64,000 bases of DNA. It comes from Dendrobates tinctorius. Its lineage: Eukaryota. The notes under the pieces were generated by a model, which saw only the letters and a program-made list of their open reading frames with translations, was not told where the DNA came from and ran no database searches. Positions 1-62,256 of this stretch are shown here, one piece after another. The position numbers and the translations under genes are program-made. Every line of letters begins with the position of its first letter. Position 1 is the first letter of the stretch. The DNA lies in assembly GCF_039654945.1 (NCBI RefSeq), contig NW_027361727.1, forward strand, positions 20,708,001 through 20,772,000, given 5' to 3'.

Positions 1-479
1 GCTTCCCCACTTGCAGGCCGTCACAGGCTCTGCTCACACGTGGCCGGTCAGCAGCACATCACATGGCTTCCACAACCGTCAGCACTCCTGGCTCAGCGTT
101 GCTCTTTGCCACTGAATTTTGCAGTCCTTATCCGCTGCTCCCAGCAACAAGGCTACACCACTGCCCATAGCCTTTTCCACCAATTGTGAGGTAGCGCTGT
201 CATTCAAGGTTGGGGGACACTCGCTTGGCAGCAAATAAATCACATCCGGTACGGGTTTTCCATAAAACCATATCAGTCCGTGAGGTTTATTCACCATCAT
301 AAACCACAGCAGCAATATACAACAGCATAGCGTCCATTGTATAGCTTTACATTACAGCATAGCGTCCATTAAACAGGCTATTTAGCCTCATCATTATCTC
401 ACCCGTCAGGGTTCCTTATGCGGCTTCACTATCGCATACGTTAGTTCCCTCCAGGGAGCTCTCAGGCACACATCGCCAA

Positions 480-1301
480 TGCTCACACAGCTGCTCCACA
501 GGCTGTTAGCGAGGAGATCCTTCTCCTCACAGGACCTTCCAAACTGGACCAATCAGGTCCCAGCATTCACTCCTTGTGACCCTTATATGGTCCATAGCCA
601 CGCCCACTGGGTCACATGGCTATGACCTCATCACAGGTCCTTCACACACTTACAAAGCCTTTTACTATAGGCGTTTTCAGACACACCCCTGGGTGGATTT
701 GTAGGTAACCAGAACCCGCCCATCTCTCTAGTTACCTGAAGACTTCTCCCTTATACTTAGAAACAATACCTCAGCCATGATATTGCTGATCACACATACA
801 CAAGTCTCCATCTCAAAGCCACCCAGTTTGAGATACATAACTATCCTTCAGGATTCTGCCACACAGCTGCTCCACAGGCTGTTAGCGAGGAGATCCTTCT
901 CCTCACAGGACCTTCCAAACTGGACCAATCAGGTCCCAGCATTCACTCCTTGTGACCCTTATATGGTCCATAGCCACGCCCACTGGGTCACATGGCTATG
1001 ACCTCATCACAGGTCCTTCACACACTTACAAAGCCTTTTACTATAGGCGTTTTCAGACACACCCCTGGGTGGATTTGTAGGTAAACAGAACCCGCCCATC
1101 TCTCTAGTTACCTGAAGACTTCTCCCTTATACTTAGAAACAATACCTCAGCCATGATATTGCTGATCACACATACACAAGTCTCCATCTCAAAGCCACCC
1201 AGTTTGAGATACATAACTATCCTTCAGGATTCTGCCACCCATCCGTTCTCTTGGGACATCCACACAGCGCCCCCTAGTGGACACAGTGGTCATTACACCA
1301 C
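480..1301 (-). mobile_element. Probable 5' LTR of an LTR element running off the left edge, with an internal 376-bp tandem duplication
   Basis: The minus strand begins TGTGGTGT at 1301 and ends CA at 480, followed by a TGGCG PBS-like start. 485-860 is repeated at 861-1236. Confidence 0.55.
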
Positions 1302-1401
1302 AGTACATAGGAGCAGTATTATAGTAGTTATATTCTTGTACATAGGGGCAGTATTATAGTAGTTATAGTCTTGTACACAGGGGCAGTATTATAGTAGTTA
1401 T

Positions 1402-3722
1402 TGTAATGTATTGTAAGATATGTATGTTAAGTAAAGTATGATGTTTCTAGAACATTATAGAAATCTCCCATTTCACTCTGATGAGAAAATCAGCTTGTCA
1501 CATAGCTTGCAGCATCCCTCCCATCCTTAACAGCTCTGTGTTCACATTGGTAATAGGACACTTCCTGCTACAAGCATTTAGCCCCTCTCCACAGAAAAGA
1601 ATGTTAATTAGTTAAGGGAAAGGATTCCTTTGTTCTGGCCACGAGGCTGGATGCAAGTATATGGGAAGTATTAAAACAAGTCATATTGCAAAAACCATAC
1701 ATCACAGAGATATAATAATTACATTTCTGCGACGGGCACGAAACCAGCTTGTCTAACCTCTAATTTTCACGGCTCTGATCCCTCCAGAAACTGAGATATG
1801 GGTTGCTCCCAAATGGAGTGTATTAATTATGGCATGTGTGATGTTGTTTTATTGTATTCGATAAACTACAACCAATGAGGCCCTCAGTGTTTTGATACAA
1901 GCTTCCCTTGTTAAAATATGGTTATCATAAGTTTTTTAGTTACTTGGCAACTTGGAAAAAGGGGGGCTGAACTTCTGCAGACTGCCCCTTTCGTGATGTA
2001 ACCGACCCTGGGCTATAAGGTACCCCTCCCTTACAGTGCTTCAGTTGAGCTGGAGTTTTGATGCTAAAAAGACGTGCCGATGTCTTGGGATGTCTGGCTA
2101 AGCGGCCCATCCCCCAGCCACATGGTCTGCCTAATACCAACTACGCACATGTAAGTGTTAATCTCTGTTTTCTTAATCCTTGTTAATTTTATATATTTGT
2201 AATGTACATATTTAATGTCTCAACTTTATAACAACCTTTATCTGTGTAATCACTGACCACATTTTGGGAATAAATGATAAAATCTATCAGTCTGCCTTCA
2301 TGCTCTAAGAAACGAACTATGCGTCTTTTTTAGATAATTCCGCCACTGTTTGGGTTGGCTTCGAACCCCTCCATTAAGTCTATAACTTAAGTGGAGAAAC
2401 CAGGAGCTGGTGGCAGCGTGGTGTGTGCGGTTGGTTAGGCTAGCTGGCAGTACAGACGGGTATTACATGCTGAATGAGGGGCTGCGGCCAAAGCATTGAT
2501 AATTCCCTTACTGCAGTAGTCTAGTTGCCCGTGCACAACAAGCAGCCCGTCCAGCGACTAATTATCCTAGGTGCAGTTCCCTGACTGACCTGAGGGTAAG
2601 GGGGGCGCCGGAGAGCTGCGAGTTCTAAAGTGGAACTGAGAAAGTGGGATATACATAAATACCCGCAGTTCTTGGGAGGTTGTTAGAAGTGGTGGGGCAA
2701 CCAAAATACCCCCCTGCGATAAATTGTTAGAGCAAGATTAGCTTGCTGTATTTTTGTCACATGGTGCCAGTGGTGGGATAACTAAGATAAGCCCCCACTG
2801 TGCCTGTGATAGCCGTGTGTCGGCTGTGTGTCGGGTCCCTTCGTCTGCTGATACACCAGTGTCAGCGGTGGGATCGTGACATATTGATGGCAAAGGGTCC
2901 ACTGTCCGTCGCCAGTTGGTGGCAGCGGTCCGCCGTTCCTCACATATTGGTGGCAGCGGTGGGATGTTCCTCACAATCCTTGCTAATTTTATATATTTGT
3001 AATGTGCATATCTAATGTCTCAACTTTATAACAACCTTTATCTGTGTAATCACTGCCCACATTTTGGGAATAAATGATAAAATCTATCAGTCTGCCTTCA
3101 TGCTCTAAGAAACGAACTATGCGCCTTTTTTAGATAATTACGCTAGTTTGGGTTGGCTTCGAACCCCTCCATTAAGTCTATAACTTAAGTGGAGAAACCA
3201 GGAGCTGGTGGCAGCGTGGTGTGTACGATTGGTTAGGCTGGTTGGCAGTCCAGAAGGGTCTTATACTGCTGAAGGGGGGCTGCGGCCACAGCATTGATAA
3301 TTCCCTTACTGCAGTAGTCTAATTGCCCGTGCACAACAAGCAGCCCATCTGGCGACTAATTATCCTAGGTGCAGTCCCCTGACTGACCTGATGGTAAGGG
3401 GGGCGCCCGGAGAGCTGCGAGTTCCAAAGTGGAACGGAGAAAGTGGGATATACATAAATCCCCGCAGTTCTTGGAAGGTTGTTAGCAGTGGTGGGGCATC
3501 CAAAATACCCCCCTGCGATAAATTGTTAGGGCAAGATTAGCTTGCTGTATATTTTTGTCACATGGTGCCAGTGGTGGGATAACTAATATAAGCCCCCACT
3601 GTGCCTGTGATAGCCGTGTGCCGGCAGTGCGTCGCATCCCTCCGTCCGCTTACATACCCGTGCCAGTGGTGGGATCATGACAATTTGGGGGTGGCGGCGG
3701 CGTGCTGTCATTGACCATCACA
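1402..3722 (+). mobile_element. Solo LTR-like insertion (2.3 kb) with an internal duplication of about 0.8 kb
   Basis: TGTAAT...ATCACA ends with GTTAT duplicated (1397-1401, 3723-3727) inside a satellite unit. TATAA at about 2014, AATAAA at about 2268 and 3069; about 2175-2960 is repeated at about 2975-3690. Confidence 0.75.
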
Positions 3723-6260
3723 GTTATATTCTTGTACATAGGGGCAGTATTATAGTAGCTATATTCTTGTACATAGGGGGCGGTAGCATAGTAGTTATAT
3801 TCTTGTACATAGGGGAAGTATTATAGTAGTTATATTCTTGTACACAGGGGCTGTATTATAGTAGTTATATTCTTGAACATAGGGAGCAGTATTATAGTAG
3901 TTATATTCTTGTACACAGGGGCAGTATTATAGTAGTTATATTCTTGCACATAGGGAGCAATATTATAGTAGTTATATTCTTGTACACAGGGGCAGTATTA
4001 TAGTAGTTATATTGTTGTACATAGGGGGCGGTAGCATAGTAGTTATATTCTTGTACATAGGGGCAGTATTATAGTAGTTATATTCTTGTACACAGAGGCA
4101 GTATTATAGTAGTTATATTGTTGTACATAGGGGCAGTATTATAGTAGTTATATTCTTGTACATAGGGGGCGGTAGCATAGTAGTTATATTCTTGCACATA
4201 GTGGCAGTATTGTAGTTATATTCTTGTACACAGGGGCAGTATTATAGTAGTTATATTCTTGTACATAGGAGCAGTATTATAGTAGTTATATTCTTGTACA
4301 TAGGGGGCAGTATTATAGTAGTTATATTCTTGTACACAGGGGCAGTATTATAGTAGTTATATTCTTGTACATAGGAGCAGTATTATAGTAGTTATATTCT
4401 TGTACATAGGGGGCAGTATTATAGTAGTTATATTCTTGTACATAGGGGCAGTATTATAGTAGTTATATTCTTGTACATAGGGGGCAGTGTTATAGTAGTA
4501 ATATTCTTGTACATAGGAGCAGTATTATAGTGGTTATATTCTTGTACATAGGAGCAGTATTATAGTAGTTATATTCTTGTACATAGGGGCAGTATTATAA
4601 CAACAAAGCAAGGGTAAATAACAGCATCATGTGTACTATAACTAAATAGGATGCCTGTGTTATGGAATAAACAAAGGATCAGTCGTTGATATGCATAGCA
4701 AAGGGGATGTGGAAACCACAAATTACGACCAAAAGAACCATTAGAAAAACATCTTTATTAAAGAATCACACAGAACGGGGCAAAGGGGGAGACACGTGCA
4801 AGGGAACAGTATTATAGTAGCTATATTATTGTACATAGGGGGTGGTAGCATAGTAGTTATATTCTTGTACATAGGGGCAGTATTATAGTAGTTATATTCT
4901 TGTACACAGGGGCAGTATTATAGTAGTTATATTCTTATACATAGGGGCAGTATTATAGTAGTTATATTCTTGTACATAGGAGCAGTATTATAGTAGTTAT
5001 ATTCTTGTACATAGGAGCAGTATTATAGTAGTTATATTCTTGTACACAGGGGCAGTATTATAGTAGTTATATTCTTGTACATAGGGAGCAGTATTATAGT
5101 AGTTATATTCTTGTACATAGGAGCAGTATTATAGTAGTTATATTCTTGTACATAGGGAGCAGTATTATAGTAGTTATATTCTTGTACATAGGGAGCAGAA
5201 TTATAGTAGTTATATTCTTGTACACAGGGGCAGTATTATAGTAGTTATATTCTTGTACATAGGGGCAGTATTAGTTATATTCTTGTACACAGAGGCAGTA
5301 TTATAGTAGTTATATTGTTGTACATAGGGGCAGCATTATAGTAGTTATATTCTTGTACATAGGGGGCGGTAGCATAGTAGCTATATTCTTGTACATAGTG
5401 GCAGTATTATAGTAGTTATATTCTTGTACGCAGGGGCAGTATTATAGTAGTTATATTCTTGTACATAGGAGCAGTATTATAGTAGTTATATTCTTGCACA
5501 TAGGGGCAGTATTATAGTAGTTATATTCTTGTACATAGGAGCAGTATTATAGTAGTTATATTCTTGTACATAGGGGGCAGTATTATAGTAGTTATATTCT
5601 TGTACATAGGGGCAGTATTATAGTAGTTATATTCTTGCACATAGGGATCAGTATTATAGTAGTTGTATTCTTGTACATAGGGGGCAGTATTATAGTTGTT
5701 ATATTCTTGTACATAGGAGCAGTATTATAGTAGTTATATTCTTGAATATAGGAGCAGTATTATAGTAGTTATATTCTTGTACATAGGAGCAGTATTATAG
5801 TAGTTATATTCTTGTACATAGGGGCAGTATTATAGTAGCTATATTCTTGTACATAGGGGGCGATAGCATAGTAGTTATATTCTTGTACATAGGGGCAGTA
5901 TTATAGTAGTTATATTCTTGTACACAGGGGCAGTATTATAGTAGTTATATTCTTGTACATAGGGGCGGTAGTATAGGAGTTATATTCTTATACATAGGGG
6001 CAGTATTATAGTAGTTATATTCTTGTACATAGGAGCAGTATTATAGTAGTTATATTCTTGTACACAGGGGCAGTATTATAGTAATTATATTCTTGTACAT
6101 AGGGAGCAATATTATAGTAGTTATATTCTTGTACATAGGAGCAGTATTATAGTAGTTATATTCTTGTACATAGGGAGCAGTATTATAGTAGTTATATTCT
6201 TGTACACAGTGGCAGTATTATAGTAGTTATATTCTTGTACATAGGGGCAGTATTATAGTA

Positions 6261-8916
6261 CCCCAGGGCCAGCCACCACCTTCTTTGACCACTTCACCAC
6301 CTGGCTATTTCATTTCCTTTCCGTGGACATCCCTACTATCATCATGGGCGACTTCAAAATCCCCATTGACACTTCCCTCTCAGCTGCCACTAAACTTCTA
6401 TCTCTCACTTCCTCCTTCGGCCTCACTCAATGGTCTTCTACAGCCTCCCACAAAGATGGCCACACACTGGACCTCATCTTCACCCGCCTCTGCTCCCTAT
6501 CTAACCTCTCTAACTCACCTCTTCCTCTCTCTGACCACAACCTTCTCACATTCTCTTCCCTCTCCACTCCATGTCTACAATCCCCACCCCACAAACTTTC
6601 ACACCCTCGCAGAAATCTTAAACACTTTGACCTACACTCATTCTCTGAATCCCTCCTCCCTCTCACAGATATAAGTTCCTTACACAATGCGGATGACGCT
6701 GCTGCTCTTTTTAACACCACAATAGCTGTAGCTTTGGAATCTGCTGCCCCACTTACACATACCAAAGCTCGCTAAATCAACAGACAGCCCTGACACACCA
6801 GCCTGACCAAAGAACTGAGGCGAGCTTCCAGGGCTGCTGAGCGCAGATGGAAAAGATCCCACTCCAACGAGCACTTCATCGCATTCAAACAGTCCCTCAC
6901 TACTTTCAAGACCACACTCGCCACAGCTAAACAAACCTACTTCTCATCTCTCATATCCTCCATGTCTCACAACCCTAAACTGTTATTCAACACCTTCAAT
7001 TCTCTCCTCCATCCCCCAGCACCTCCTCCCTCCCCACTCATCTCAGCTGAAGACTTTGCCTCATTTTTCAAGCAGAAGATTGATAACATCAGAGACAGTT
7101 TTGGTCAACAACCCACAGAGCCCTTCCTCCCGACTTCCCAGCCCTCCACCTCCAAAACCAACTTCTCCACCATTACAGAAGATCGACTCTCCACTCTACT
7201 CTCAAGATCACATCTCACCACCTGTGCACTTGACCCGATCCCATCCCACTTCATCCCAACCCTAACCCATCTCTTCAACCTATCACTAACAACTGGTGTT
7301 TTCCCCTCAAGCTTTAAACATGCCTCCATCACACCTATCCTCAAAAAGCCCTCTCTTGACCCATCCTCTGTATCTAGCTATCGCCCTATATCACTTCTCC
7401 CCTACGCCTCCAAGCTACTGGAACAACACGTCTACCTTGAACTGTCCTCCCATCTCTCTTCTTGCTCCCTCTTCGACCGCTTACAATCTGGCTTCCGGTC
7501 ACACCACTCCACTGAAACTGCCCTTACTAAGGTCACCAATGACCTCTTAACCGCCAAAAACAAGCGACACTACTCTGTCCTCCTCCTCCTGGACCTGTCG
7601 GCTGCCTTTGACACAGTGGACCATTCCCTATTATTACAGACCCTCTCATCCCTTGGCATCACAGACTTGGCCCTATCCTGGATCTCATCATACCTAACAG
7701 ACCGGACATTCAGCGTCTCCCACTCACACACCACCTCCTCACCTCGCCCCCTATCTGTCGGAGTCCCACAAGGTTCAGTCCTAGGACCCCTGCTCTTCTC
7801 CATTTACACCTTTGGCCTGAGACAGCTCATAGAATCTCATGGCTTTCAGTATCATCTCTATGCTGATGACACACAGATCTTCATCTCTGGACCAGATATC
7901 ACCTCCCTACTAACCAGAATCCCTCAATGTATGTCCACTGTTTCATCCTTCTTCGCTAGATTTCTGAAACTTAACATGGACAAAACAGAATTCATCATCT
8001 TTCCCCCATCTCACGTGACCCCCCCAACGCACCTATCCATTACAGTAAATGGCTGCCCACTCTCTCCAGTCCCACAAGCTCGCTGCCTCGGGGTAATCCT
8101 TGACGCTGATCTCTCCTTCAAACCACATATCCAAGCCCTTTCCACTTCCTGCCGACTTCAACTCAAAAATATTTCACAAATCCGTTCATTCCTCAACCAA
8201 AAATCTGCAAAAACCCTAGTCCATGCTCTCATCATCTCTCGCCTTGACTACTGCAACCTCCTGCTCTGTGGCCTCCCCTCGAACACTCTAGCACTCCTCC
8301 AATCTATTCTAAACTCTGCTGCCCGACTAATCCACCTGTCCCCCCGCTATTCCCCAGCTTCTCCCCTCTGTCAATCCCTTCACTGGCTCCCCATTGCCCA
8401 GAGACTCCAGTACAAAACCCTAACCATGACATACAAAGCCATCCACAACTTGTCTCCTCCATACATCTGTGACCTCGTCTCCCGGTACTTTCCTGCACGC
8501 AACCTCCGATCCTCACAAGATCTCCTTCTCTACTCCCCTCTTATCTCCTCTTCCCACAATCGCATACAAGATTTCTCTTGCGCATCACCCCTACTCTGGA
8601 ACTCTCTACCACAACATATCAGACTCTCACCTACCATCGAAACCTTCAAAAAGAGCCTGAAGACCCACCTCTTCCGACAAGCCTATAACCTGCACTAACC
8701 ACTGATCGACCAAACCGCTGCATGACCAGCTCTACCCTCGCCTACTGTATTCTCACCCATCCCTTGTAGATTGTGAGCCTTCGCGGGCAGGGTCCTCTCT
8801 CCTCCTGTACCAGTTATGACTTGTATTGTTTAACATTATTGTACTTGTTTTTATTATGTATAACCCTCCTTACATGTAAAGCACCATGGAATAAATGGCG
8901 CAATAATAATAATAAT
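6261..8916 (+). mobile_element. 5'-truncated L2/CR1-group LINE inserted in the satellite array
   Basis: Endonuclease C-terminus (MGDF..GHTLDLIF..LSDH) 6323-6775, RT ORF 6962-8698 ([14 protein letters not shown]), 3' UTR ending in (AAT)n; stops between the domains. Confidence 0.93.
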
Positions 8917-11900
8917 AGTTATATTCTTGTACATAGGGGGCAGTATTATAGTAGTTATATTCTTGTACATAGGGGCAGTATTATAGTAGATATATTCTTG
9001 TACACAGGGGGCAGTATTATAGTAGATATATTCTTATACATAGGAGCAGTATTATAGTAGTTCTATTCTTGTACATAGGGGCAGTATTATAGTAGTTCTA
9101 TTCTTGTACATTGGAGGGCAGAATTATAGTAGATACCAACCCAAATTACAGCTCACCCATGCATAAACTGGGACCACCCTAAAAGCATTACAGCTTCAAG
9201 TGTGACATACAGAGATGCTTTTAATCACAGACAAACAATCTGTTAGCATTGCTTATTTACATTGATGAGCCAATTGTAGGTATCACTCAGCCTTCATTAA
9301 CCTTTGAATAGACGAATGCACAATGAAAGTACAACTGACAAAATGTAATTAACAAAAGAAGAAAACCACTTGAATGTATTCACTGTTCTACAGAACAGAC
9401 TATAGTGAAGGGCTAATGCCAAATAAAATGAGTTTTCTTACTAAGATCAAAAGGGACACAAGTATTTGGGGAAAATCCAATAAGTTTCCATGTTGAGTGT
9501 GCTCTCCACAGCTGTAAGTCTTGTTAACTCTTTGTATTCCTTGCATCCTTAAATAAGGGGTGCTTCCTGTATGTTTGGTAATGCAATGTGCTAACACTTC
9601 TGAGATGTTTCTTTTAATTGAGGAGGAGGCATCCCAAATATCTATAAAGTTGTGCTTTTTAAGTTACCAGTAATGCATCCCAGATATTGAAATTATAAAA
9701 GGTTGTGCAAGTGATCAGATTCACAATGAAAACAGTATTACAATTGATATGTTGTTTTAATTAAAACATTTTGTTATTGGAAGTAGAGGCAAAAGCATGT
9801 TCACATCAAGATATTTTACTACATAAATGTTGTGGACGATCACATTCGCAGTATTATAGTAGTTATATTCTTGTACATAGGGGGCAGTATTATAGTAGTT
9901 ATATTCTTGTACATAGGGGGCAGTATTATAGTAGTTATATTCTTGTATATAGGGGGCAGTATTATAGTAGTTATATTCTTGTACATAGGGGGCAGTATTA
10001 TAGTAGTTATATTCTTGTACATAGGGGCAATATTATAGTAGTTATATTCTTGCACATAGGGGGCAGTATTAGAGTAGTTATATTCTTGTACATAGGGGCA
10101 GTATTATAGTAGTTATATTCTTGTACATAGGAGCAGTATTATAGTAGTTATATTCTTGTACACAGGGGCAGTATTATAGTAGTTAGATTCTTGTACATAG
10201 GGGCAGTATTATAGTAGTTATATTCTTGTACATAGGGGCCAGTATTATAGTAGTTATATTCTTGTACACAGGAGCAGTATTATAGTAGTTATATTCTTGT
10301 ACATAGGGGGCAGTATTATAGGAGTTATATTCTAGTACATAGGGGCAGTATTATAGTAGTTATATTCTTGTACACAGGAGCAGTATTATAGTAGTTATAT
10401 TCTTGTACATAGGGGGCAGTATTATAGTAGTTATATTCTTGTACATAGGGGCAGTATTATAGTAGTTATATTCTTGTATATAGGAGCAGTATTATAGTAG
10501 TTATATTCTTGTACATAGGGGCAGTATTATAGTAGTTATATTCTAGTACATAGGGGCAGTATTATAGTAGTTATATTCTTGTACATAGGGGCAGTATTAT
10601 AGTAGTTATATTCTTGTACATAGGGGGTAGTATTATAGTAGTTATATTCTTGTACATAGGGGGTAGTATTATAGTAGTTATATTCTTGTACATAGGAGCA
10701 GTATTATAGTAGTTATATTCTTGTACATAGGGGCAGTATTATAGTAGTTATATTCTTGTATATAGGGGCAGTATTATAGTGGTTATATTCTTGTACATAG
10801 GAGCAGTATTATAGTAGTTATATGCTTGTACATAGGGGCAGTATTATAGTAGTTATATTCTTGTACATAGGGGGCAGTATTATAGTAGCTATATTCTTGT
10901 ATATAGGAGCAGTATTATAGTAGTTATATGCCTGTACATTGGAGCAGTATTATAGAAGTTATATTCTTGTACATAGGGGCAGTATTATAGTAGTTATATT
11001 CTTGTATACAGAAGCAATATTATAGTAGTTATATTCTTTTACATAGGAGCAGTATTATAGTAGTTATATTCTTGTACATAGGGGGCAGAATTATAGTAGT
11101 TATATTCTTGTACATAGGGGGTAGTATTATAGTAGTTATTTTCTTGTACATAGGGGGTAGTATTATAGTAGTTATATTCTTGTACATAGGAGCAGTATTA
11201 TAGTTGTTATATTCTTGTACATAGAGGGCAGTATTATAGGAGTTATATTCTTGTATATAGGGGCAGTATTATAGTAGTTATATGCTTGTACATAGGGGCA
11301 GTATTATAGTAGTTATATTCTTGTACATAGGAGCAGTATTATAGTAGTTATATGCTTGTACATAGGGGCAGTATTATAGTAGTTATATTCTTGTACATAG
11401 GGGGCAGTATTATAGTAGCTATATTCTTGTATATAGGAGCAGTATTATAGTAGTTATATGCCTGTACATTGGAGCAGTATTATAGAAGTTATATTCTTGT
11501 ACATAGGGGCAGTATTATAGTAGTTATATTCTTGTACATAGGGGGCAGTATTATAGTAGTTATATTCTTGTACATAGGGGGCATTATTATAGTAGTTATA
11601 TTCTTGTACATAGGGGGCAGTATTATGATAGCTATATTCTTGTACATAGGGGGCAGTATTATAGTAGTTATATTCTTGTATATAGGGGCAGTATTATAGT
11701 AGTTATATTCTTGTATATAGGGGCAGTAGTATAGCAGTTAAATTCTTGTACATAGCGAGCAGCATTATAGTAGTTATATTCTTGTACATAGGGGCAGTAT
11801 TATAGTAGTTATATTCTTGTACATAGTGGCAGTATTATAGTAGTTATATTCTTGTACATAGGGAGCAGTATTATAGTAGTTATATTCTTGTACATAGGAG

Positions 11901-13829
11901 GCAGTATTATAGCAGTTATATTCTTGTACATAGGAGGCAGTATTATAGTAGTTATATTTTTGTACATAGGAGCAGTATAATAGTAATTATATTCATGTAT
12001 ATAGGAGCAGTATTATAGTAGTTGTATTCTTGTACATAGGGGCAGTATTATAGTAGTTATATTCTTGTACAGAGGGGCAGTATTATGGTAGTTATTTTCT
12101 TGTATATAGGAGCAGTATTATAGTAGTTATATTCTTGTACATAGCGGGCAACATTATAGTAGTTATATTCTTGTATATAGGGGCAGTATTATAGCAGTTA
12201 TATTCTTGTACATAGAGGGCAGTATTATAGTAGTTATATTCTTGTACATAGGAGCAGTATTATAGAAGTTATATTCTTGTACATAGGGGCAGTATTATAG
12301 TAGTTATATTTTTGTACATAGGAGGCAGTATTATAGTAGTTATATTATTGTATATAGGGGCAGTATTATAGTAGTTATATTCTTGTACATAGGGGCAGTA
12401 TTATAGTAGTTATATTCTTGTACATAGGGGCAGTATTATAGTAGTTATATTCTTGTACATAGGGGCAGTATTATGGTAGTTATATTCTTGTATATAGGAG
12501 CAGTATTATAGTAGTTATATTCTTGTACATAGGAGGCAGTATTATAGTAGTTATATTTTTGTACATAGGGGCAGTATTATAGTAGTTATATTCTTGGAAT
12601 TCTTCTTGCGGCAGTGCGGGGATGATCCTTCCTTCCTTCCTAAGTGTATGCTTCAACCAGGTCCTGCACTGACCTGTGGATCTGCAGCAGCGGCCATTAA
12701 TATATGTCTTTCCTTCACTCTCACCAGGTGAGTAGTTTTCTTGGTGGGCAACTCTGTGTAACGTTTGATAAGACCCTATTTGCGTTTTTTGTGTCTCCCT
12801 CTTTTCTCTGAGTAATTATGTTTTATAATAGGTAGTGATGGTAGAGCACGGTAAATGTATTCAGTTTACTGACTATATAAGTTGTTAGAACAATAGTCGT
12901 AGGGAATAGAAAAGTAATAATCACCTAACCTGTATTTTTGGCAGGACAATCGTAAAATATGTTCCCAAATCAAATAATGGATGAGTGACAAAATTATAGC
13001 TACCATCTGTACAACTCTCAAGACTGTGGTTATAATGAGACAGCTTTTATGATCAGCAGGTTCCGTACTTGCTTTTTGCATTACAGGTTAATTATTGTAA
13101 TAGAACTTTTTTTACTGCTCATGTATCACGTTCCCATCGTCTTATGTGATATAGGGGATTTGTATGTGTTACTCTGGTACATAAAAAAAAACCTCAAAGA
13201 GAATGTTTGGGATTACAAAGTCAAAAAAAGCAAACCAGAAAGCACAAAGAAAAATAACCCCTACTATGAGATAAGCCCTAATTTTGGGGGATATATACTA
13301 CGAGAAGTTTACAGCACTTTAGCACTTTTTGTTGAGACCGAGTGTCTCTCCACTAGGGTTTTTTTTTCTTTTCGGTTATACATGTATGTGTGTGTTTTTC
13401 TGTGTATCCTGTTTTTGTATAAGCAGGGTGGTCTAGGGCCTTCTAGGGATTACCAACGTTGAGCGGGGGGCGCCACATCATCAACTAGGGTGCCAACCTC
13501 CGCAGTCTGGAAGGGATTTTATTAGGGCCCAGTAGGGTGTGATTAGCTTTTTTGCCCCCTTTCATATGTACATACCTATTCTGACGTTGATTCTGTACTT
13601 TGCTATTTGGCTTTAGACCCTCTGGTTTCTAGAAGTTTTCTACTATGATGTTTTAATTATTGAATTAAAAGGTAATTTTTAGGGGTTATCCTTCTTTGTG
13701 CTTTCTGGTTTGCTTTTTTTTTGTTGCTCTGGTACATACAGTATTTGTATGGGATGACACTGGCACGGCTTTCATTGGCACCTCAGGCGGTATAAAGTCT
13801 ATAAGAGATTTTATAAACTAAACTCGTAC

Positions 13830-16800
13830 CCATTTCCAGAGTGGATATTCAGATAGTCCTTCTCTGTGGTCCTTTCCGTAAATCGGATACAAGTTAGGGT
13901 TGTGAAGGTCTCGAGGGCGGCCGTAATCAGCTCTTTATTTTCATCACCTGGAAGCACAAGGTGGGAGCAACAAATCTACAATCTGCTTCATTTTCTGCAT
14001 TGGTGACCTGCATCTGAATCATAGCAGGGTTTTCTTTGACCCAAGGGACTAGATTCCGTTTTTCTGCCATACATCAAAATACTATAACCAAAATCCCCTG
14101 ACCCATGTGGAGTGGCTTGGTGGTGCCTCAAAGTGGACATTCACCATAAAGCTCCTTTTTTGAAGCTCTGCCTTTGTACAAGATGTTAAAATGTTAATTA
14201 ATGTCCATGCTTTCTTATCTTGCAACAGTGACATCAGGATATCAAGAATAAATGTTATCACATGTCCCAACTTCATACAATACTCCCCAAAATTAATACA
14301 TTAGCATACATGGCACATCTCTGTCTGCCTAGTGCTTGGCACCAGTAGAAATATAAAGTACGGTATAAGCCTAAAAATGTATGTGCCAAGTCACTGAATA
14401 CACTGCAGTGCCCTATGCTAGGCTGCCAGTGCCCCCATTAGCAACACATCACCCCTTTCACACTTACTATAATCAGAGGCCAGACTGTAGGGCACCGTTA
14501 CCACGCCATCCGCAGATTTTTCCCACAGACAATAGGGGCACTTTATGGCACTGTACCTTGTGTCCATCACAATATCACCATGATACAATTTAACTGTGGA
14601 GTCTAAATAACAGAACAGAGCATGTGTGTGATGAAGACACAGTTCTTTCTTTATGCTGTGGAGAGAAAGGACGATAGTTACCTTTGTTGGACCTTAGTAT
14701 CTTTGTGAAAACATCGTCTATCTCCTCAGCCTCTGTGCTGGTTAACATTGGAGCTGATGGATAAAAATAAATTACATGTTATGCAAAATGCATGTAAATG
14801 CAACATTATGGCCTGTAGTGGACCCCCATTGCGGTGCCTCTTCATTAAAACAGTACCGTAACTATTTAATGTGTGACAGTATATAGGACATAACACTGTA
14901 GATTAGGAAATCACAAAGAAGGACTTTTAGAGCATATACACTACATGGACAAGAGTAAAAGGACACCTACAGATTACACTATAGGAGATTTTCATACACA
15001 GGACGAAAGGGGCTGAATGTATACATCAAAGGGCCAACAAGGTTGGATGTCATTAATAGTGATGAGCGAGTATGCTTGTTATTCGAGATTTCCGAGCATG
15101 CTCGGGTGCTCTCCGAGTATTTTGGGCGTGCTCGGAGATTTAGCAACAGGGCCAGATGTTATACAGTGGGGGCAACAAGGTCTAATGGTATACACCGGAG
15201 GTAATTGTGCTGGATGTTTTACACCAGTGGTGAGGGGCAGGATGTTATACATCGGGGGGCAATGGGCAATGATGTTATGCACTGGTGGCAATGAGGCCGG
15301 CTATTATAGACCTGGAGCAAGGGGCCGGATATTATACACTTGGGGCAACGGGGCCAGATGTTATACACCGGGGGCAACAGGGCCGGATGTTATACGCAAG
15401 GGGAAATTTGGCTTGCCGAATAGGTTTCTCTTCCAGGAAAATAGAATGGGTCCCAATATGTGTCGGCACTTAGCTAATGTGGACTATGGATGCCAAGAAC
15501 TTACCATCTGTTGTCATTCTGTTTTTTAGCTGAAAAGAAATAAAAGGTTATTAGAATAATTCTAACACCAACATTAATCTGCTCCTTGTCTTTTATAAGT
15601 AATATACTTTATGTTCTATATCATTTTATGAATTCTGCTTGCTTTCAATGATTGGAGTCCTTGGAAGAATAGAAACCTATATAAACATATAACAAGTTCC
15701 AATGCCTGGACTCAGATGTTTTTTTTAATCCACCTGATGTTACACTTGTCATCCATGTGTCCGTTTTTTATATCTGTCTGACTTCAATTTTATACATTCA
15801 CAATTAGAAAAACAAACAAAAAAAACAAATACGGTATTCTACGTCGACCATGGCAGTGAGTCCTTTAAAGGGAATCTGTCACCGGAAGTTGCAGGCCTAT
15901 GTAAATGGCTTGGGTCCGGTCCGATGGGCGGTGTTTCTTCTTTTTTTTTCCATCCCATCCGTGGCCCCCATCCGCGCTCTTCTCTGGTATTCTTCTCCAT
16001 CGTTTGCGCGTGCGCAAAGCAATCTTGATTCGCGCACGCTCAGTATGCTTTGCCCAACTGCTGGCAAAGCCGAAAATCATTACTCCGTATGCGCCGGTAC
16101 ACTATGTCCCAGAAGTATTTCGCTGTTTTCCTGGACATAGTGTATCGGCGCATCCACAGTAATGATTTTCGGCTGCCAGATTGCTTTGCGCACGCGCAAA
16201 CGATGGAGAAGAATACCGGAGAAGAGTGCGGACGGGGGCCATGGATGGGGTGGAGAAAAAAGAAGAAACACCGCCCATCGTACCAGACCCAGGCCATTTA
16301 CATAGGCCTGCAACTTCCGGTGACACATTCCCCTTAAAAATTGGTGCCATACAGATAATGGATCAGAGTAGTGAATGAAGCAGCATTTTTTTTTTAGACA
16401 TGGATCATGGTGAGTCCACTTGCACTTGAGCGTACACTCATCTGAACGAGCCCTACGTCAGTCGCAGATAATGAGGATAAGTTTTCAACCTGTGAATATA
16501 TAAAAGGAATCTTTTTGCAAACTTAAAGCAAGCAGCGGCGACATCGGCCAGAGTTCTAGGACAAAGTATCCGCGGCACTGGCAGAACTTTTCCTCCTGTC
16601 AGATCCACTTATATGTTTCCGGAGGCCTCATCAAAGTCTGCGGCTGCCGATAAGAAGCCAGAGAAAGGTGACTATGTGGTCAGCTCTTATTAACATCTGT
16701 CAGCAGCACCTGCTTGTTGATGGTTTCCATTCAGAAACTTAAAAAAAAAAAAAAAAAAACAAATAAAGACAAAACTTATGTTCATTGAGCTTACCCTATA

Positions 16801-17085
16801 TATTTTTCAACAACTTTTAAAAGGGGCACAACATTTCAAGCTTGTCCACAATGCCAAAAATTTCTAATAGGTGTTGGATCCACTTTTTCAATTTCCTTTC
16901 CCATAGAAGTGAACGGAGAGGTCCACTAGGTGGTCACAGAAAAAAAGTCCAAAAGTGGAAGCAGCAGCACCCATCAGACTGGAATATCCCTTTAAGTGCT
17001 CACATTGCTGAATGGCTTCTGTACTCACCGGAAAGACATCAGTAAATGGTAGAAGTAGGAGGCAGATGAGGACAGGACTGCGCAT
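13830..17085 (-). CDS. Astacin-family (M12A) secreted metalloendopeptidase, hatching enzyme/UVS.2-like; first five coding exons only
   Basis: Minus-strand GT-AG exons 17085-17029 (MRSPVLICLLLLPFTDVFP, signal-like), 15529-15505 (LKNRMTTD), 14753-14682 (PMLTSTEAEEIDDVFTKILRSNK), 14602-14468 (STVKLYHGDIVMDTRYSAIKCPYCLWEKSADGVVTVPYSLASDY), 13947-13830 (DENKELITAALETFTTLTCIRFTERTTEKDYLNIHSGN). Phases join without stops. GDI propeptide motif, CLW..S.DG.V.VPY and TCIRF..R....DY are astacin hallmarks. HExxH exon not found. Confidence 0.88.
15869..16333. mobile_element. Palindromic MITE with TTAA target and AGGGAATCTGTCA ends (Kolobok/T2-like)
   Basis: TTAA|AGGGAATCTGTCACC...GGTGACACATTCCCC|TTAA with inverted arms along nearly the whole length. 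Confidence 0.85.
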
Positions 17086-17784
17086 TGTTCTGTTTCTGTG
17101 TAGCAGCTGCGTCTGTCTCCTGGTATATGTACCGGCCTCACCGGCCAGCTGCCAAGGTTCCTCATCGATAAGGATGATGGGAGTCATTACTTGTGCACAA
17201 TTCTGGAAGACCTTGGTATGAATAAATATCCCGTCATCAAGGTGTTTCCATTGTTCGAGCCATTGGCTATGTTACCTGTGGTGGCATCGGGGAGATTTGG
17301 GGCTCAGAATCCCATAATTTATATATGGAGGATCATTAGATTTGTATATTTGTGCCCCCGACCCCCTTACCCCCCCACTGCCGCCTCCATCGTGGCACCC
17401 TGCAAATATCTGCTCACAAGAGTCAGGGGGGCTGTCTACGGCTGATGCATGTATTTAGGACTGAAATCTGGTTTTGCAATTCGGTTTTTATTAAAAATGT
17501 TGCTTTTTTTTTTCTCAGCACATTTAACAGTTGATGTGGCCTGCGGTCATAAATCAAGCCATAAAAGAGTTAGAATCCCTCCGATTGGATCTTCAAAATA
17601 AGCTCACTGATGGTTTCTCAGTTAACTCCTACAATAGAAAGCGCAACACGTGAGACCATAGAAGGCAGACAGAGAAAAAAAAAGTATTATTAAAACTAAT
17701 TACATAAAGTTATTTTCAGTAAAAAAATAAATAAATGTTTTCAAGGTGGACAACCCCTTAGTAAGGGCCAATAGTAGCCAAATA

Positions 17785-18057
17785 AAGACCACGCCCCCCG
17801 TTACAACCACGCCCCCTAGAAAGACATGCGCATGAGACGCCTCTGAGCGTCACTCAGTGCAGGGAACCCTCCAGGAGGCGCGTGCGCTCTTCGAGCTGTA
17901 GTTGGTTCAGGAGCCGCCAGGTGGCGCTGTGGGTTTAGCAGCATAGACGGCGCCGTGATCCGGTCTTTTCCCGCTTCCCCTCTGTCCAGTTGCTCTCTGC
18001 GCACACACTGAGGAGATTACCGTCACTGAGAGAACATCGCCGGTGTTAGATACAGAC
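17785..18057. promoter_or_regulatory. API5 CpG-rich promoter/5' UTR, inside the <1 kb divergent interval shared with the astacin gene
   Basis: Two CCACGCCCCC GC boxes (about 17789 and 17807), NRF1-like CATGCGCATG (about 17825), CTCF-like CCGCCAGGTGGCGC (17914-17927), high CpG density. Confidence 0.65.
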
Positions 18058-21000
18058 ATGCCGACCGTGGAGGAGCTGTACCGGAACTACGGGATCCTGG
18101 CCGACGCCAAGGACGACGTGAGCCAGGTAAGAACCGAAACATGGTGCTGCGGGACGTAGGCCTCTGTGTGCGGCGCTCAGGGCCAGTCTTTCGCGGCCTG
18201 TACTTTCCCTCCTCTCCTGTTTCCAGGCCTGGTCTCTCGGTGCTCGCCTCTGTGTTTCCCAGGCCCTTCTCCCGCCTTTTCCCCGGGCCTCGTCCTCTCT
18301 CTATGCTCCATAATGTGTTCTTCCTCACAGCAACCAATCACAGAGCAGCTTTCCTACGGACAGTGTAGAGTGTGGAATGAAAGCCGAGCTGTTATTGGTT
18401 GTTATGGGCAAAAACACTTTTCTTCTTTTAGGCCCCTTCATAAATCCCCCCCCATTATGTTTACATCTTGTGAAGGTTGTGTGCAATACCCGTGATTGGG
18501 GGACATGTCACCTCCACATGCTTCTTGCTATTATCCCCCCCCCCAATTGCATTTTAAATGAGATTTCAGCCGGATCGTGCAGCCCTTTAATGAGCAGTAG
18601 GCTCACAATCCTGCTGTATATGCTCAGCCGCTGTGTAACCTTTACACTTGTCACTGCGGGCCTCACACACCTGCTCTGATTTGTGGCTTCCTTTTCATGT
18701 TGATTTCTTAAGTTTTCTGTATGTACAATAATAAATTATATTGTGGTACCGTGTTAGCCAGAAAAATCAATGTGAATACTTTTCTGCCCAATGATGACAA
18801 AAGTATTCTCAGAGTGATACCTTTTATTGGCTAACCAGAAAATGTTTGCAAGCTTTCAGAGCACAGAGGCGCCTTCTTCAGGCAAATAACAAATGGATGA
18901 ATAAGAAAAAAAGCACAACATTTAAGGGATACTACAGTAGGATATTTGTTCATTAGGTGGGAGGTGTGATGCCTCCTAAAGAGAAGTCAAGGAAATCGAA
19001 TTAGCATTTTCTTATAGTGGTAAGAAAAAAGTGGTTTGGTACTGAGTTAGCAAGTAGAAAAAAAATATATAAAGTGCTCTCAGTGAGAGAAAAAAAATAG
19101 GAATCTTGTCTCAAAAGCTTGCTTTGTAACATCATTCACTATAATTTGTTAGCCATTAAAAGGTATCATACCCACAAGATTCCTATTTTGTTTCTCTCAC
19201 TGAGAGCACTTTATATATATTTTTTTTCTACTTGCTAACTCAGTACCAAACCACTTTTTTTCATCTTACAAATGGAGAGGCAGTGGGAATGATGTTCTTA
19301 GTTGACTGGAGTGAAGTGTGAACTTCCACCAGAAGGACTTCAGACATCTAAGAACATCATTCCCACTGCCTCTCCATTTGTAAGAAAATGCTAATTCGAT
19401 TTCCTTGACTTATCTTTAGGAGGCATCACACCTCCCACCTAATGAACAAATATCCTACTGTAGTATCCCTTAAATGTTGTGCTTTTTTTCTTATTAATCC
19501 ATTTATCTTGCCTGAAGAAGGAGCCTCTGTGCTCTGAAAGCTTGCAAACATATTATTTTCTCATTAGCCAATAAAGGTATCACTCTGAGAATACTTTTGT
19601 CATCATTGGGCGGAAAAGTATTCACATTAAGTTTTCTGTAGTAATTTTTATGATTTAACTTTTCCCAATCATTCTCATTTATAACATGCTATTAATGTTG
19701 ATATTGACCACCGCTGTGCCAGGTAAAAACCAAATAGGCTCATTATCAGAGTTTTCTTCCTCCTGGTTTGCATACGTTCTCAGTTTTGCTGTACAAGCCT
19801 CCAATGCAATATATATAACCACCGAGCTACTGCATGACCAGCTCTACCCTCGCCTACTGCATCCTCAGCCTTCCCCTGAAGATAGTGAGCCTTTTCGGGC
19901 AGGGTCCTCTCTCCTCATGTGCCAGTCGTGACTTGTATTGTTTAAGAATACTGTACTTGTATTTATTATGTATACCCCTCCTCACATGTAAAGCGCCATG
20001 GTATAAATGGCGCTATAATAATATATAGCCCGTCATCAGCTGCAGTGTAATACAGGAAATAAATATTATTCCTGTGTCACACTGTTCTATATTATACTGC
20101 AGCTGAAACCAAAGATTACTAGAATATATTCAATCTGCCACTCACTTCAGTTGTAATTCCTCGGGTATCTTCTTGTATGATTATAAAGATGGCCACAGTC
20201 GGCAATATTAATGCTTTACTTCCTTGAAAAGCCGCATCTGGTAACTCATTTTTGTCCGGGACCTTGCACACTCAATCAATAAAAGGAAGGATCCAGCTCA
20301 ACGAAATCGTGAAATAAATTGTGATCCTTTATTCACTGGGAAACATGCTTGATAGAGGATTAAAACATCATTATGAACAGTTGATGAAATGCGATATTGG
20401 CGCGTTTCGGTCACCAGAAACGCATCGATGTCGCGTTTCATGATCTGTTCACGCTGATGTTTTCATCCTCTATCAAGCATGTTTCCCAGTGCATAAAGGA
20501 TCACAATTTTTTTTTTACTATTTTGTTGAGCTGGATCCTTCCTTTTATTGATTGCTTCACAGCGTTTCCGTGCTCCGAACTTTAAAGATGTCTAATACGG
20601 TGTGCTGAACTTTGTTATACTCAATGCATTTATATCCTTGTAGTAGACACTTGTATAATTCTCCAATCTTCCAGAAACACTTTTCTACTATTTTAAAATG
20701 GCTTCCGTAGTGGACTGAACTGGGGCTGTCGGAGCAGATGCCCGGAGCCTGCTTGCTGGGAAGGAAACCTAGACCAGCTCCTAAACCTGGCACTATGGGG
20801 GTTATAAAGAGTCCTCTAAAGTAGAGTAATAGTTAAGAGTTTACCGAATTTTTAATACATTTATTAGAAAAAAAAAAGCTTAAAGTGGTTGTCTAGTCTT
20901 AGGGTGTGTGCACACGCTGCGGATTCTGCTGCGGTTCCGGCCGCTGCGGGTCCGCAGCAGTTTTTGCTCCGGTGTACAGTACCATGATTCCCTATGGGAA

Positions 21001-61269: not shown

Positions 61270-62256
61270 TATGTACAAGAATGTACCAGTAACTACTATA
61301 ATACTGCTCCCTATGTACAAGAATATAACTACTATAATACTGCCCCCTATGTACAAGAATATAACTACTATAATACTGCTCCCTATGTACAATAATATAA
61401 CTACTATAATACTGCTCCTATGTACAAGAATATTACTACTATAATACTGCCCCTATGTACAAGAATATAACTACTATAATACTGCCCCCTATGTACAAGA
61501 ATATAACTACTATAATACTGCTCCCTATGTACAATAATATAACTACTATAATACTGCCCCCTATGTACAAGAATATAACTACTATAATACTGCCCCCTAT
61601 GTACAAGAATATAACTACTATAATACTGCCCCCTATGTACAAGAATATAACTACTATAATACTGCCCCCTATGTACAAGAATATAACTACTATAATACTG
61701 CCCCCTATGTACAAGAATATAACTACTATAATACTGCCCCCTATGTACAAGAATATAACTACTATAATACTGCCCCCTATGTACAAGAATATAACTACTA
61801 TAATACTGCTCCCTATGTACAAGAATATAACTACTATAATACTGCCCCCTATGTACAAGAATATAACTACTATAATACTGCCCCCTATGTACAAGAATAT
61901 AACTACTATAATACTGCCCCCTATGTACAAGAATATAACTACTATAATACTGCCCCCTATGTACAAGAATATAACTACTATAATACTGCCCCCTATGTAC
62001 AAGAATATAACTACTATAATACTGCCCCCTATGTACAAGAATATAACTACTATAATACTGCCCCCTATGTACAAGAATATAACTACTATAATACTGCCCC
62101 CTATGTACAAGAATATAACTACTATAATACTGCCCCCTATGTACAAGAATATAACTACTATAAAACTGCCTCCTATGTACAAGAATATAACTACTATAAT
62201 ACTGCTCCTACCTATGTACAAGAATATAACTACTATAATACTGCCCCTATGTACAA
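61270..62256 (-). repeat. Same satellite in opposite orientation, homogeneous 39-bp units, in TTC17 intron 1
   Basis: About 25 copies of CCTATGTACAAGAATATAACTACTATAATACTGCCC[C]. Confidence 0.97.

Follow-up and report, generated by a model that had tools for sequence, protein, structure and literature searches.

Five exons beside API5 in Dendrobates tinctorius are very probably the 5' end of an annotated, hatching-enzyme-type astacin gene

Five short minus-strand exons in a 64-kb stretch of Dendrobates tinctorius DNA (the whole stretch analysed here, hereafter the window) lie head-to-head with API5 and encode the beginning of an astacin-type protease, and no catalytic exon follows them in the window. 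This raises the question of whether they belong to a functional gene. The original prediction described them as a hidden gene, either lineage-specific, with a large repeat-filled intron and a divergent promoter region shared with API5, or a recently truncated copy. We conclude, with a probability of about 93%, that the five exons are the true 5' end of an ordinary single-copy astacin gene of the hatching-enzyme (HE) type, which is already annotated and whose catalytic and CUB exons are placed to the left of the window by the NCBI gene model. The features of the locus are listed in Table 1.

Table 1. Features of the astacin–API5 locus in the window.
Feature	Coordinates	Strand	Description
API5 exon 1 (MPTVEELYRNYGILADAKDDVSQ)	18058..18126	+	Head-to-head neighbour; 17897-18135 matches other API5 5' ends
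N-terminal extension of RefSeq X1	17086..17187	-	34 codons; translates to XP_073434647.1 residues 1-34
Conserved proximal astacin promoter (candidate)	17120..17301	-	Four-species alignment; blastn to Engystomops, Rhinoderma, E. coqui and Dendropsophus
Exon 1	17029..17085	-	57 nt; start codon and putative signal peptide MRSPVLICLLLLPFTDVFP; residues 35-53 of XP_073434647.1
Foldback element	15864..16338	.	Palindromic, about 475 bp; inside intron 1
Exon 2	15505..15529	-	25-nt micro-exon, propeptide; within the exact match to XP_073434647.1
Exon 3	14682..14753	-	72 nt; propeptide (…EAEEIDDVFTKILRSNK)
Exon 4	14468..14602	-	135 nt; aspartate switch HGDIVM; mature N-terminus with KCPYCLW
Exon 5	13830..13947	-	118 nt; first astacin-domain strands (…TLTCIRFTERTTEKDYLNIHSGN-G); ends in phase 2
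Proximal intron 5	1..13829	-	Donor GT 13829-13828; runs off the left edge of the window
Conserved intron-5 segment	12836..13095	-	69-72% identity, collinear in Engystomops, Rhinoderma, E. coqui and Dendropsophus
Satellite block 1 (35 bp)	9848..12596	.	78 copies (TRF)
Satellite block 2 (35 bp)	8912..9135	.	6 copies (TRF)
LINE fragment	6285..8698	+	Partial endonuclease ORF and 578-aa RT ORF; antisense to the astacin gene
Satellite block 3 (35 bp)	3722..6260	.	72 copies (TRF)
Satellite block 4 (35 bp)	1303..1401	.	2.8 copies, same orientation; array still running near the window edge

Reading the exons confirmed the predicted structure: the five exons, which span 17085-13830 on the minus strand and amount to 407 nt when joined, contain no stop, have compatible phases and are all flanked by AG/GT, with ten of ten splice sites intact. 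Exon 1 has a homologue with an identical donor in Engystomops, Rhinoderma, Eleutherodactylus coqui and Dendropsophus, the Engystomops orthologue has a 25-nt exon at the position equivalent to exon 2, and exon 4 is 84% identical to its counterpart in the E. coqui orthologue. In a spliced mRNA contig of a relative the 3|4 junction is exact, both the 3|4 and 4|5 junctions fall at the boundaries predicted in the window, and the contig continues uninterrupted beyond the position where exon 5 ends. The predicted lack of a catalytic exon also held: a search by regular expression found no exon encoding the HExxHxxGxxH, Met-turn or GCxSxxG motif on either strand of the 64-kb window, and tblastn of 237 astacin-family proteins against the window matched exons 1, 3, 4 and 5 only, with no match past exon 5. 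Looser expressions for degenerate zinc-site, Met-turn and GCxSxxG motifs returned chance matches only, for example ISGMHYW at 9684, followed by a stop.

The joined 135-residue peptide is exactly identical to residues 35-169 of the D. tinctorius protein XP_073434647.1, and the exons are therefore far beyond chance; exon 5 by itself is 100% identical to residues 132-170. XP_073434647.1 (X1) and XP_073434648.1 (X2), named 'astacin-like metalloendopeptidase', come from assembly GCA_039654945.1, and because of these entries the gene cannot be called hidden. The RefSeq product is complete and its name carries no low-quality flag: it has the zinc site HEINHALGFYH at 199-209 with RSDRD at 213, encoded by an exon outside the window, the Met-turn SVMHY at 251-255, also outside the window, and two CUB domains after the protease domain. 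Since the annotated gene spans 54,345 bp (54.3 kb), about 37.2 kb of it extends to the left of base 1 of the window, and the exons encoding CWSS…HEINHALGFYH…SVMHY and the CUB domains would, according to the NCBI gene model, lie up to about 37 kb beyond that edge. The gene is thus already known, being present in RefSeq, and is neither hidden, truncated nor lineage-specific.

XP_073434647.1 has API5 head-to-head at the same distance as the window gene and differs from it in its start. In the annotation API5 lies 871 bp from the X1 start, in agreement with positions 17187 and 18058 of the window; X1 begins 34 codons upstream of ATG 17085. This extension overlaps a conserved block containing a TATA-like motif and is interrupted by indels in the other species of a four-species alignment, and the Ranitomeya imitator model begins at MRSPV, i.e. 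at the ATG corresponding to 17085. The extension is probably 5' flank or promoter and not coding, X1 starting 34 codons too early, and ATG 17085, which is also the start originally predicted, is more likely than 17187.

Membership of the peptidase family M12A, as originally proposed, was borne out by searches run exon by exon, with Pfam also run on the full annotated product; the exons were joined for the frame and exact-match checks. Exon 5 alone, a 38-aa piece, matched Pfam PF01400 (Astacin) with an E value of 1.8e-4 and 21.7 bits for a cut-off of 22.5 bits, and the whole product XP_073434647.1 scored 193.5 bits (E 3.8e-57). Exons 3 and 4, searched singly, gave no Pfam match because they are too short, and recognition of exon 4 in a protein-atlas search was below threshold. 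The best PDB match of exon 4 was the mature N-terminus of medaka HCE-1, and exon 5 matched astacin, ZHE1 and HCE1. Features of a secreted zymogen are found in exon 1, which encodes a hydrophobic N-terminus, MRSPVLICLLLLPF, recognized by eye as a signal peptide, and in exon 4, which encodes HGDIVM. C6astacins are defined by two additional cysteines at the mature N-terminus, six in all (PMC8812170); here the two are found in KCPYCLW (C107 and C110 of XP_073434647.1) and align with HCE-1 residues 5 and 10. The product would be a secreted zymogen of the C6astacin branch of M12A, in which a signal peptide is followed by an aspartate-switch propeptide, a zinc protease domain and two CUB domains. By analogy with other frog HE genes, we infer expression and proteolytic activity of this gene, for which the hatching gland or another part of the embryonic ectoderm is a plausible site. 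A hatching function should not be assumed, since there are frog HE paralogues with expression outside the hatching gland, e.g. in the fin (PMC8812170).

In a maximum-likelihood tree of 48 rows, to which the window peptide contributes 83 columns only, this peptide falls on a short branch beside Anomaloglossus in a hyloid clade (100% support). This clade is nested in a 25-row anuran orthogroup (100% support), which lies inside the amphibian HE radiation and tracks the frog phylogeny. Its members share no more than 55% identity with the UVS.2-like paralogues, and the orthogroup contains one orthologue per frog across Anura, for which reason the idea of a lineage-specific gene was abandoned. We also considered that the window gene might be a partial paralogue of Engystomops GDO81_011093, as suggested by satellites that are 94-96% identical while the exons are 77-81% identical, and further by the absence of API5 exon 1 from the Engystomops and Rhinoderma flanks. 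This was rejected because API5 lies beside the orthologue in E. coqui and Dendropsophus, and because of the exact match to the D. tinctorius protein.

The prediction of a large repeat-filled intron is supported: intron 5 exceeds 13.8 kb, and region 1-13829 consists mostly of 35-bp satellite, a LINE and other repeats, as had been described. The LINE, which has satellite on both sides, carries its RT ORF at 6962-8698 (+), with a weak match to an RVT-bearing protein. A satellite with a unit of 35 or 36 bp is also found in intron 5 of Engystomops, Rhinoderma, E. coqui and Dendropsophus, where it ends 25-570 bp before exon 6, and the conserved intron-5 segment precedes it in every orthologue whose DNA was read. 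The unit, AACTACTATAATACTGCCCC(C)TATGTACAAGAATAT, is almost unchanged in the five hyloid species, while the flanking intron is about 70% identical, and a literature search for it returned nothing. That hyloids from several families have an apparently orthologous satellite, conserved in sequence, in this intron is one of the small additions of this check, along with the API5 adjacency and the doubtful X1 start described here. In the large genome of D. tinctorius the array has been amplified, with the LINE and further repeats splitting it, to over 13.8 kb. That the satellite has a maintained role, for example in the control of splicing or transcription rate, or is a hyloid-wide satellite of unusual sequence conservation, seems to us unlikely; alternatively, a genome-wide repeat family that these species share may have seeded the intron repeatedly and neutrally. 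The foldback element in intron 1 has inverted repeats of 83, 84 and 47 nt, which are 87-94% complementary.

With no catalytic exon in the 13.8 kb past exon 5, the exons could be taken for a recently truncated or decaying copy, of which only the 5' third remains beside API5, the annotated model joining this remnant to exons that have lost their function. We give this explanation hardly any credence. On the terminal branch leading to the window gene, least-squares estimates over the 249 nt of exons 4-5 are 0.41 for dS and 0.042 for dN, i.e. a dN/dS of about 0.1, and pairwise dN/dS values over the same 249 nt range from 0.14 to 0.29; exons 4-5 are under purifying selection on the D. tinctorius lineage. 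This branch ratio and the completeness of the RefSeq product are the reasons for which the proposal of a recently truncated copy fails. In addition, the window's protein branch in the maximum-likelihood tree measures 0.073, less than the 0.10 found for Anomaloglossus, the reading frame is free of stops and all splice sites are intact, the promoter is conserved, the orthologues of Ranitomeya and Phyllobates are likewise full length, and relatives, too, normally have a long intron 5 filled with satellite. As a gene of 54 kb may have no more than its first third inside a 64-kb window, finding no catalytic exon nearby is no evidence of truncation, a caution that applies to large repeat-rich amphibian genomes.

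The short spacer invites a different explanation of the locus, in which it acts as a functionally shared bidirectional promoter that couples a tissue-specific protease to the housekeeping gene API5. The ATGs of the two genes (17085 on the minus strand and 18058 on the plus strand) are indeed merely 973 bp apart, exactly as predicted, and API5 is annotated adjacent to the astacin gene in the D. tinctorius record. In E. coqui and Dendropsophus ebraccatus, where API5 is also head-to-head with the orthologue, the 5' end of API5 shares 79-80% identity with window positions 17897-18135. The adjacency is therefore genuine, is retained among hyloid frogs and is unusually close here; it extends the published picture of HE synteny. 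However, the spacer measures 8.9 kb in E. coqui and 6.5 kb in D. ebraccatus, where it contains a transposase-derived gene, and API5 exon 1 was not found within 6.8 kb (Rhinoderma) or 12.4 kb (Engystomops) of the orthologue. Moreover, conservation in the spacer is confined to two separate blocks, 17120-17301 and 17897-18135, each hugging its own gene, and the roughly 600 bases that separate the blocks are not conserved. The astacin side appears to be of the TATA type while the API5 side was judged GC-rich by reading the sequence. In the astacin block the alignment suggests a TATA-like ACATATA, a GATA-like CTTATC and an E-box CAGCTG, which are candidate names, and the astacin gene seems to have its own conserved TATA-type proximal promoter of about 200 bp. 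These separate blocks and long spacers leave the predicted shared promoter region unsupported, and functional coupling of the two genes is quite improbable.

In conclusion, the locus is best read as the opening third of a gene that is correctly annotated and belongs to a well-known, much-duplicated frog HE family, and as such has little biological import. Its closest known counterparts are the frog HE genes (Xenopus XHE/UVS.2 and XHE2; Nagasawa et al. 2022, PMC8812170), with which it shares the signal peptide, propeptide, astacin domain and two CUB domains, as well as the two extra N-terminal cysteines. It lies within the multi-copy amphibian HE radiation but differs from the UVS.2-like paralogues in forming a separate single-copy orthogroup, represented in Xenopus by XP_017948750 and XP_018112508. 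In X. laevis the member of this orthogroup adjoins a C2-domain gene, presumably syt13, and an accs-like gene. This location is in or near the 'HE-synteny-set' of PMC8812170, where API5, the neighbour of the hyloid orthologues, is not mentioned; the Xenopus accessions of the orthogroup, sought in the supplements of that paper in order to map an XlHE/XtHE number, were not found there.

Structurally closest to exons 4 and 5 are the teleost enzymes HCE-1 (PDB 3VTG) and ZHE1 (PDB 3LQB), which share the mature N-terminus N/S-A-x-K-C-x-x-C-x-W-x-K and the TCIxF…DYxxI strand. Unlike the product of the window gene, teleost hatching enzymes have no CUB domains, and a good many of them are encoded by intronless retrocopies that lie at different loci (PMC8812170). 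Crayfish astacin (PDB 1AST), the M12A prototype, is more distant, exon 5 aligning to its residues 30-59 with 20 bits, and the crayfish enzyme is likewise without CUB domains. Its protease domain has four cysteines, not six. The zinc site HExxHxxGxxH and the Met-turn SxMHY are nevertheless common to crayfish astacin and the full product of the window gene.

The five minus-strand exons belong to an ordinary member of the frog hatching-enzyme (HE) family, and the gene is annotated already. The 90% cluster of an Anomaloglossus protein holds two Dendrobates tinctorius entries, XP_073434647.1 (P0242, 531 aa, isoform X1 of an "astacin-like metalloendopeptidase") and XP_073434648.1 (P0247, isoform X2). 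Together the five window exons encode 135 residues that are identical to residues 35–169 of P0242; the original description of the gene as hidden is therefore not supported. P0242 continues with CWSSIGKVGG…HEINHALGFYH (199–209)…RSDRD…SVMHY (251–255) and ends in two CUB domains. The indexed gene spans 54,345 bp, with API5 in the opposite orientation at a distance of 871 bp from the start of X1, exactly the distance between 17187 and 18058 in the window; by these two values, the gene extends about 37.2 kb leftward beyond window base 1. Exons 6 onward are known from NCBI's gene model, not from DNA read here.

Coordinates of the exons, the LINE and the satellite arrays in the window and in orthologous loci
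Feature	Location	Strand	Length
Exon 1	window 17085-17029	minus	57 nt
Exon 2	window 15529-15505	minus	25 nt
Exon 3	window 14753-14682	minus	72 nt
Exon 4	window 14602-14468	minus	135 nt
Exon 5	window 13947-13830	minus	118 nt
API5 exon 1 (MPTVEELYRNYGILADAKDDVSQ)	window, starts 18058	plus	
LINE with 578-aa reverse-transcriptase ORF	window 6962-8698		
35-bp satellite blocks left of exons	window 9848-12596, 8912-9135, 3722-6260, 1303-1401		
Satellite arrays, window	9848-12596, 8912-9135, 3722-6260, 1303-1401, 61290-62256		
Satellite arrays, Engystomops (L001)	17250-17605		
Satellite arrays, Rhinoderma (L002)	14155-14293, 18543-19893		
Satellite array, Eleutherodactylus coqui (L003)	15943-19150		
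Satellite arrays, Dendropsophus (L006)	13511-14646, 15096-15332		

Reading the minus strand and rebuilding the exons by script (sum 407 nt) gave AG at all acceptors, GT at all donors, compatible phases and no stop, with 973 bp between the API5 exon 1 start and the astacin ATG, exactly as in the original prediction. The absence of a catalytic exon left of 13829 was likewise borne out: none of the window's frames contains an exon for HExxH in an astacin context, for the Met-turn or for GCxSxxG, and 237 astacin-family proteins compared with the whole window by tblastn matched exons 1, 3, 4 and 5 only. Intron 1 contains a near-perfect palindrome of ~475 bp (15864–16338), foldback- or MITE-like, with arms 87–94% complementary.

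Isoform X1 starts at an ATG at 17187, and its 34 extra codons (17086–17187, minus strand) overlap a TATA block within the proximal promoter, a stretch of ~200 bp (17120–17301) strongly conserved in the alignment of four species, in which a TATA-like ACATATA lies ~40 nt upstream of ATG 17085. Other species have indels in the region of these codons. The Ranitomeya imitator model begins at MRSPV, and the Phyllobates X1 model also starts 34 codons upstream of MRSPV. The extension is probably an annotation artefact, because the signal peptide would be buried by it, and ATG 17085, originally proposed, is a more likely start than 17187.

Family searches were run exon by exon, the joined peptide being assembled in local scripts only. 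Exon 5 alone matched Pfam Astacin with an E value of 1.8e-4 (21.7 bits, cut-off 22.5 bits) and, in the PDB, crayfish astacin, zebrafish ZHE1 and medaka HCE-1. The best PDB match of exon 4 was the HCE-1 mature N-terminus, including the C-x-x-C-x-W motif that is the defining criterion of six-cysteine astacins (PMC8812170). The aspartate-switch motif, HGDIVM, is likewise encoded by exon 4. Together with the Pfam Astacin score of P0242 (193.5 bits), these matches support the astacin call.

Two origins had been envisaged, a lineage-specific gene or a recently truncated copy. With exon 5 as query, phmmer against a representative library of 1.84 billion proteins led to P0002, an Engystomops pustulosus model that is truncated and 79% identical over exon 5. 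P0002 and the Rhinoderma protein P0018 then served as seeds for word searches, from which a clean orthogroup emerged, with one protein of ~497–502 aa per frog species, composed by Pfam of an Astacin domain and two CUB domains. Identity to the query declines smoothly from 84% (hyloids) to 62% (Xenopus, Bombina); the paralogues that come next reach 55% at most. In a maximum-likelihood tree of 48 rows, in which the exon 4–5 peptide represents the window, this peptide falls in the hyloid clade (100% support), nested in a 25-row anuran orthogroup (100% support) whose topology matches frog phylogeny; the row closest to it is that of Anomaloglossus, at 86% identity, and it sits on a short terminal branch (0.073). 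One orthologue per species in so well supported an orthogroup does not fit a lineage-specific gene. As for truncation, Nei–Gojobori estimates on exons 4–5 (249 nt, five taxa) gave dN/dS of 0.14–0.29 in all pairs, a least-squares fit of the same 249 nt to the ML topology gave dS 0.41 and dN 0.042 on the window branch (ratio ~0.1), and a three-taxon estimate including exon 1 gave 0.21. L005, a contig of spliced mRNA from a related frog that includes the full CDS (Logan SRR5149420), shows the 3|4 and 4|5 exon junctions precisely at the sites predicted from the window splice sites, and it continues unbroken past the point where exon 5 ends. The low dN/dS, these junctions, the conserved promoter and the complete RefSeq product leave little room for a truncated copy.

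The third element, a large repeat-filled intron, is supported by the 54,345-bp gene and by the region left of the exons, which is mostly satellite, LINE and other repeats. The promoter, exon 1, exons 3–5 and a 130–280-bp piece of intron 5 (window 12836–13095) are collinear and 69–86% identical in all four orthologous loci compared (L001, L002, L003 and L006); the exon 2 region has a match in L001 and L002 only. In all four species the same 35/36-bp satellite follows the conserved intron-5 piece, and 25–570 bp separate its end from exon 6, which encodes the zinc site and begins with CWSS. Intron 5 is shortest in Engystomops (0.85 kb), followed by Dendropsophus (2.2 kb) and E. coqui (4.3 kb), and longest in Rhinoderma (6.9 kb). 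The four window blocks left of the exons share one orientation, the last lying near the window's edge, and the simplest reading of this arrangement is one ancestral array that was amplified and later interrupted by the LINE and by further insertions. Among relatives, the whole gene covers 9 kb (Xenopus laevis, Dendropsophus), 24 kb (E. coqui) or 40 kb (bullfrog), with which a 54-kb poison-frog gene is in keeping. The unit, AACTACTATAATACTGCCCC(C)TATGTACAAGAATAT (35/36 bp), is present in intron 5 of the astacin orthologue in five hyloids that represent different families, among which its consensus differs by only 1–3 bases, the flanking intron being ~70% identical. Judged by eye, the unit has no histone stem-loop and so looks unlike a histone-derived 36-bp satellite. 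Arrays of it occur elsewhere in these loci as well, none is present in the X. laevis locus (L004, 1–29127), and a literature search found no paper on the unit sequence. This orthologous intronic satellite, nearly unchanged in five hyloids, is the only mildly unusual thing at the locus. Other repeats in the window are a 376-bp unit in tandem duplicate (484–1238, 99.5% identity), two 711-bp direct repeats 93 bp apart (2175–2881 and 2975–3682, 92.7% identity) and a 190-bp stretch just past the LINE 3' end (8718–8907) that recurs in API5 intron 1 (19830–20019, 88% identity) and is probably a LINE 3' tail or a SINE.

The D. tinctorius gene record likewise shows API5 and the astacin gene head-to-head, and this arrangement recurs at the orthologue in E. 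coqui (8.9 kb apart) and Dendropsophus (6.5 kb apart, with a DDE_Tnp_4 gene between); the nearest 6.8 kb in Rhinoderma and 12.4 kb in Engystomops contain no API5 exon 1. A shared promoter had been proposed. Conservation in the 973-bp spacer is limited to 17120–17301 and 17897–18135, each block adjoining one gene, which argues for two ordinary promoters, close here by chance, rather than one shared bidirectional promoter. The intervening Dendropsophus ebraccatus gene (L006, 3756–6744) is annotated, encodes 395 aa and is Harbinger-type transposase-derived. In Engystomops pustulosus (L001, CM033644.1; 10001–18074, 21437–28074) the GenBank model GDO81_011093 is truncated (275 aa), with a spurious 51-aa N-terminus; the remaining protease and CUB exons were not found before an opposite-strand wnt gene 3.4 kb downstream, in a locus that holds 198 N.

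The genes syt13, prdm11, tp53i11, tspan18 and cd82 form the 'HE-synteny-set' (Nagasawa et al., 2022, PMC8812170). The X. laevis orthologue, XP_018112508.2 (L004, chr 4L, CM030346.1, 1–29127), is not beside API5; it lies between an accs-like gene (Myb_DNA-bind_4/aminotransferase) and a C2-domain gene that we take to be syt13, and these neighbours suggest that the X. laevis member is in or near this set. In human, the genes of the set and API5/TTC17 all lie within ~2 Mb at 11p11.2-p12. Mammals are reported to have lost the HE gene (PMC8812170), which explains why no astacin next to human API5 was known to the original prediction.
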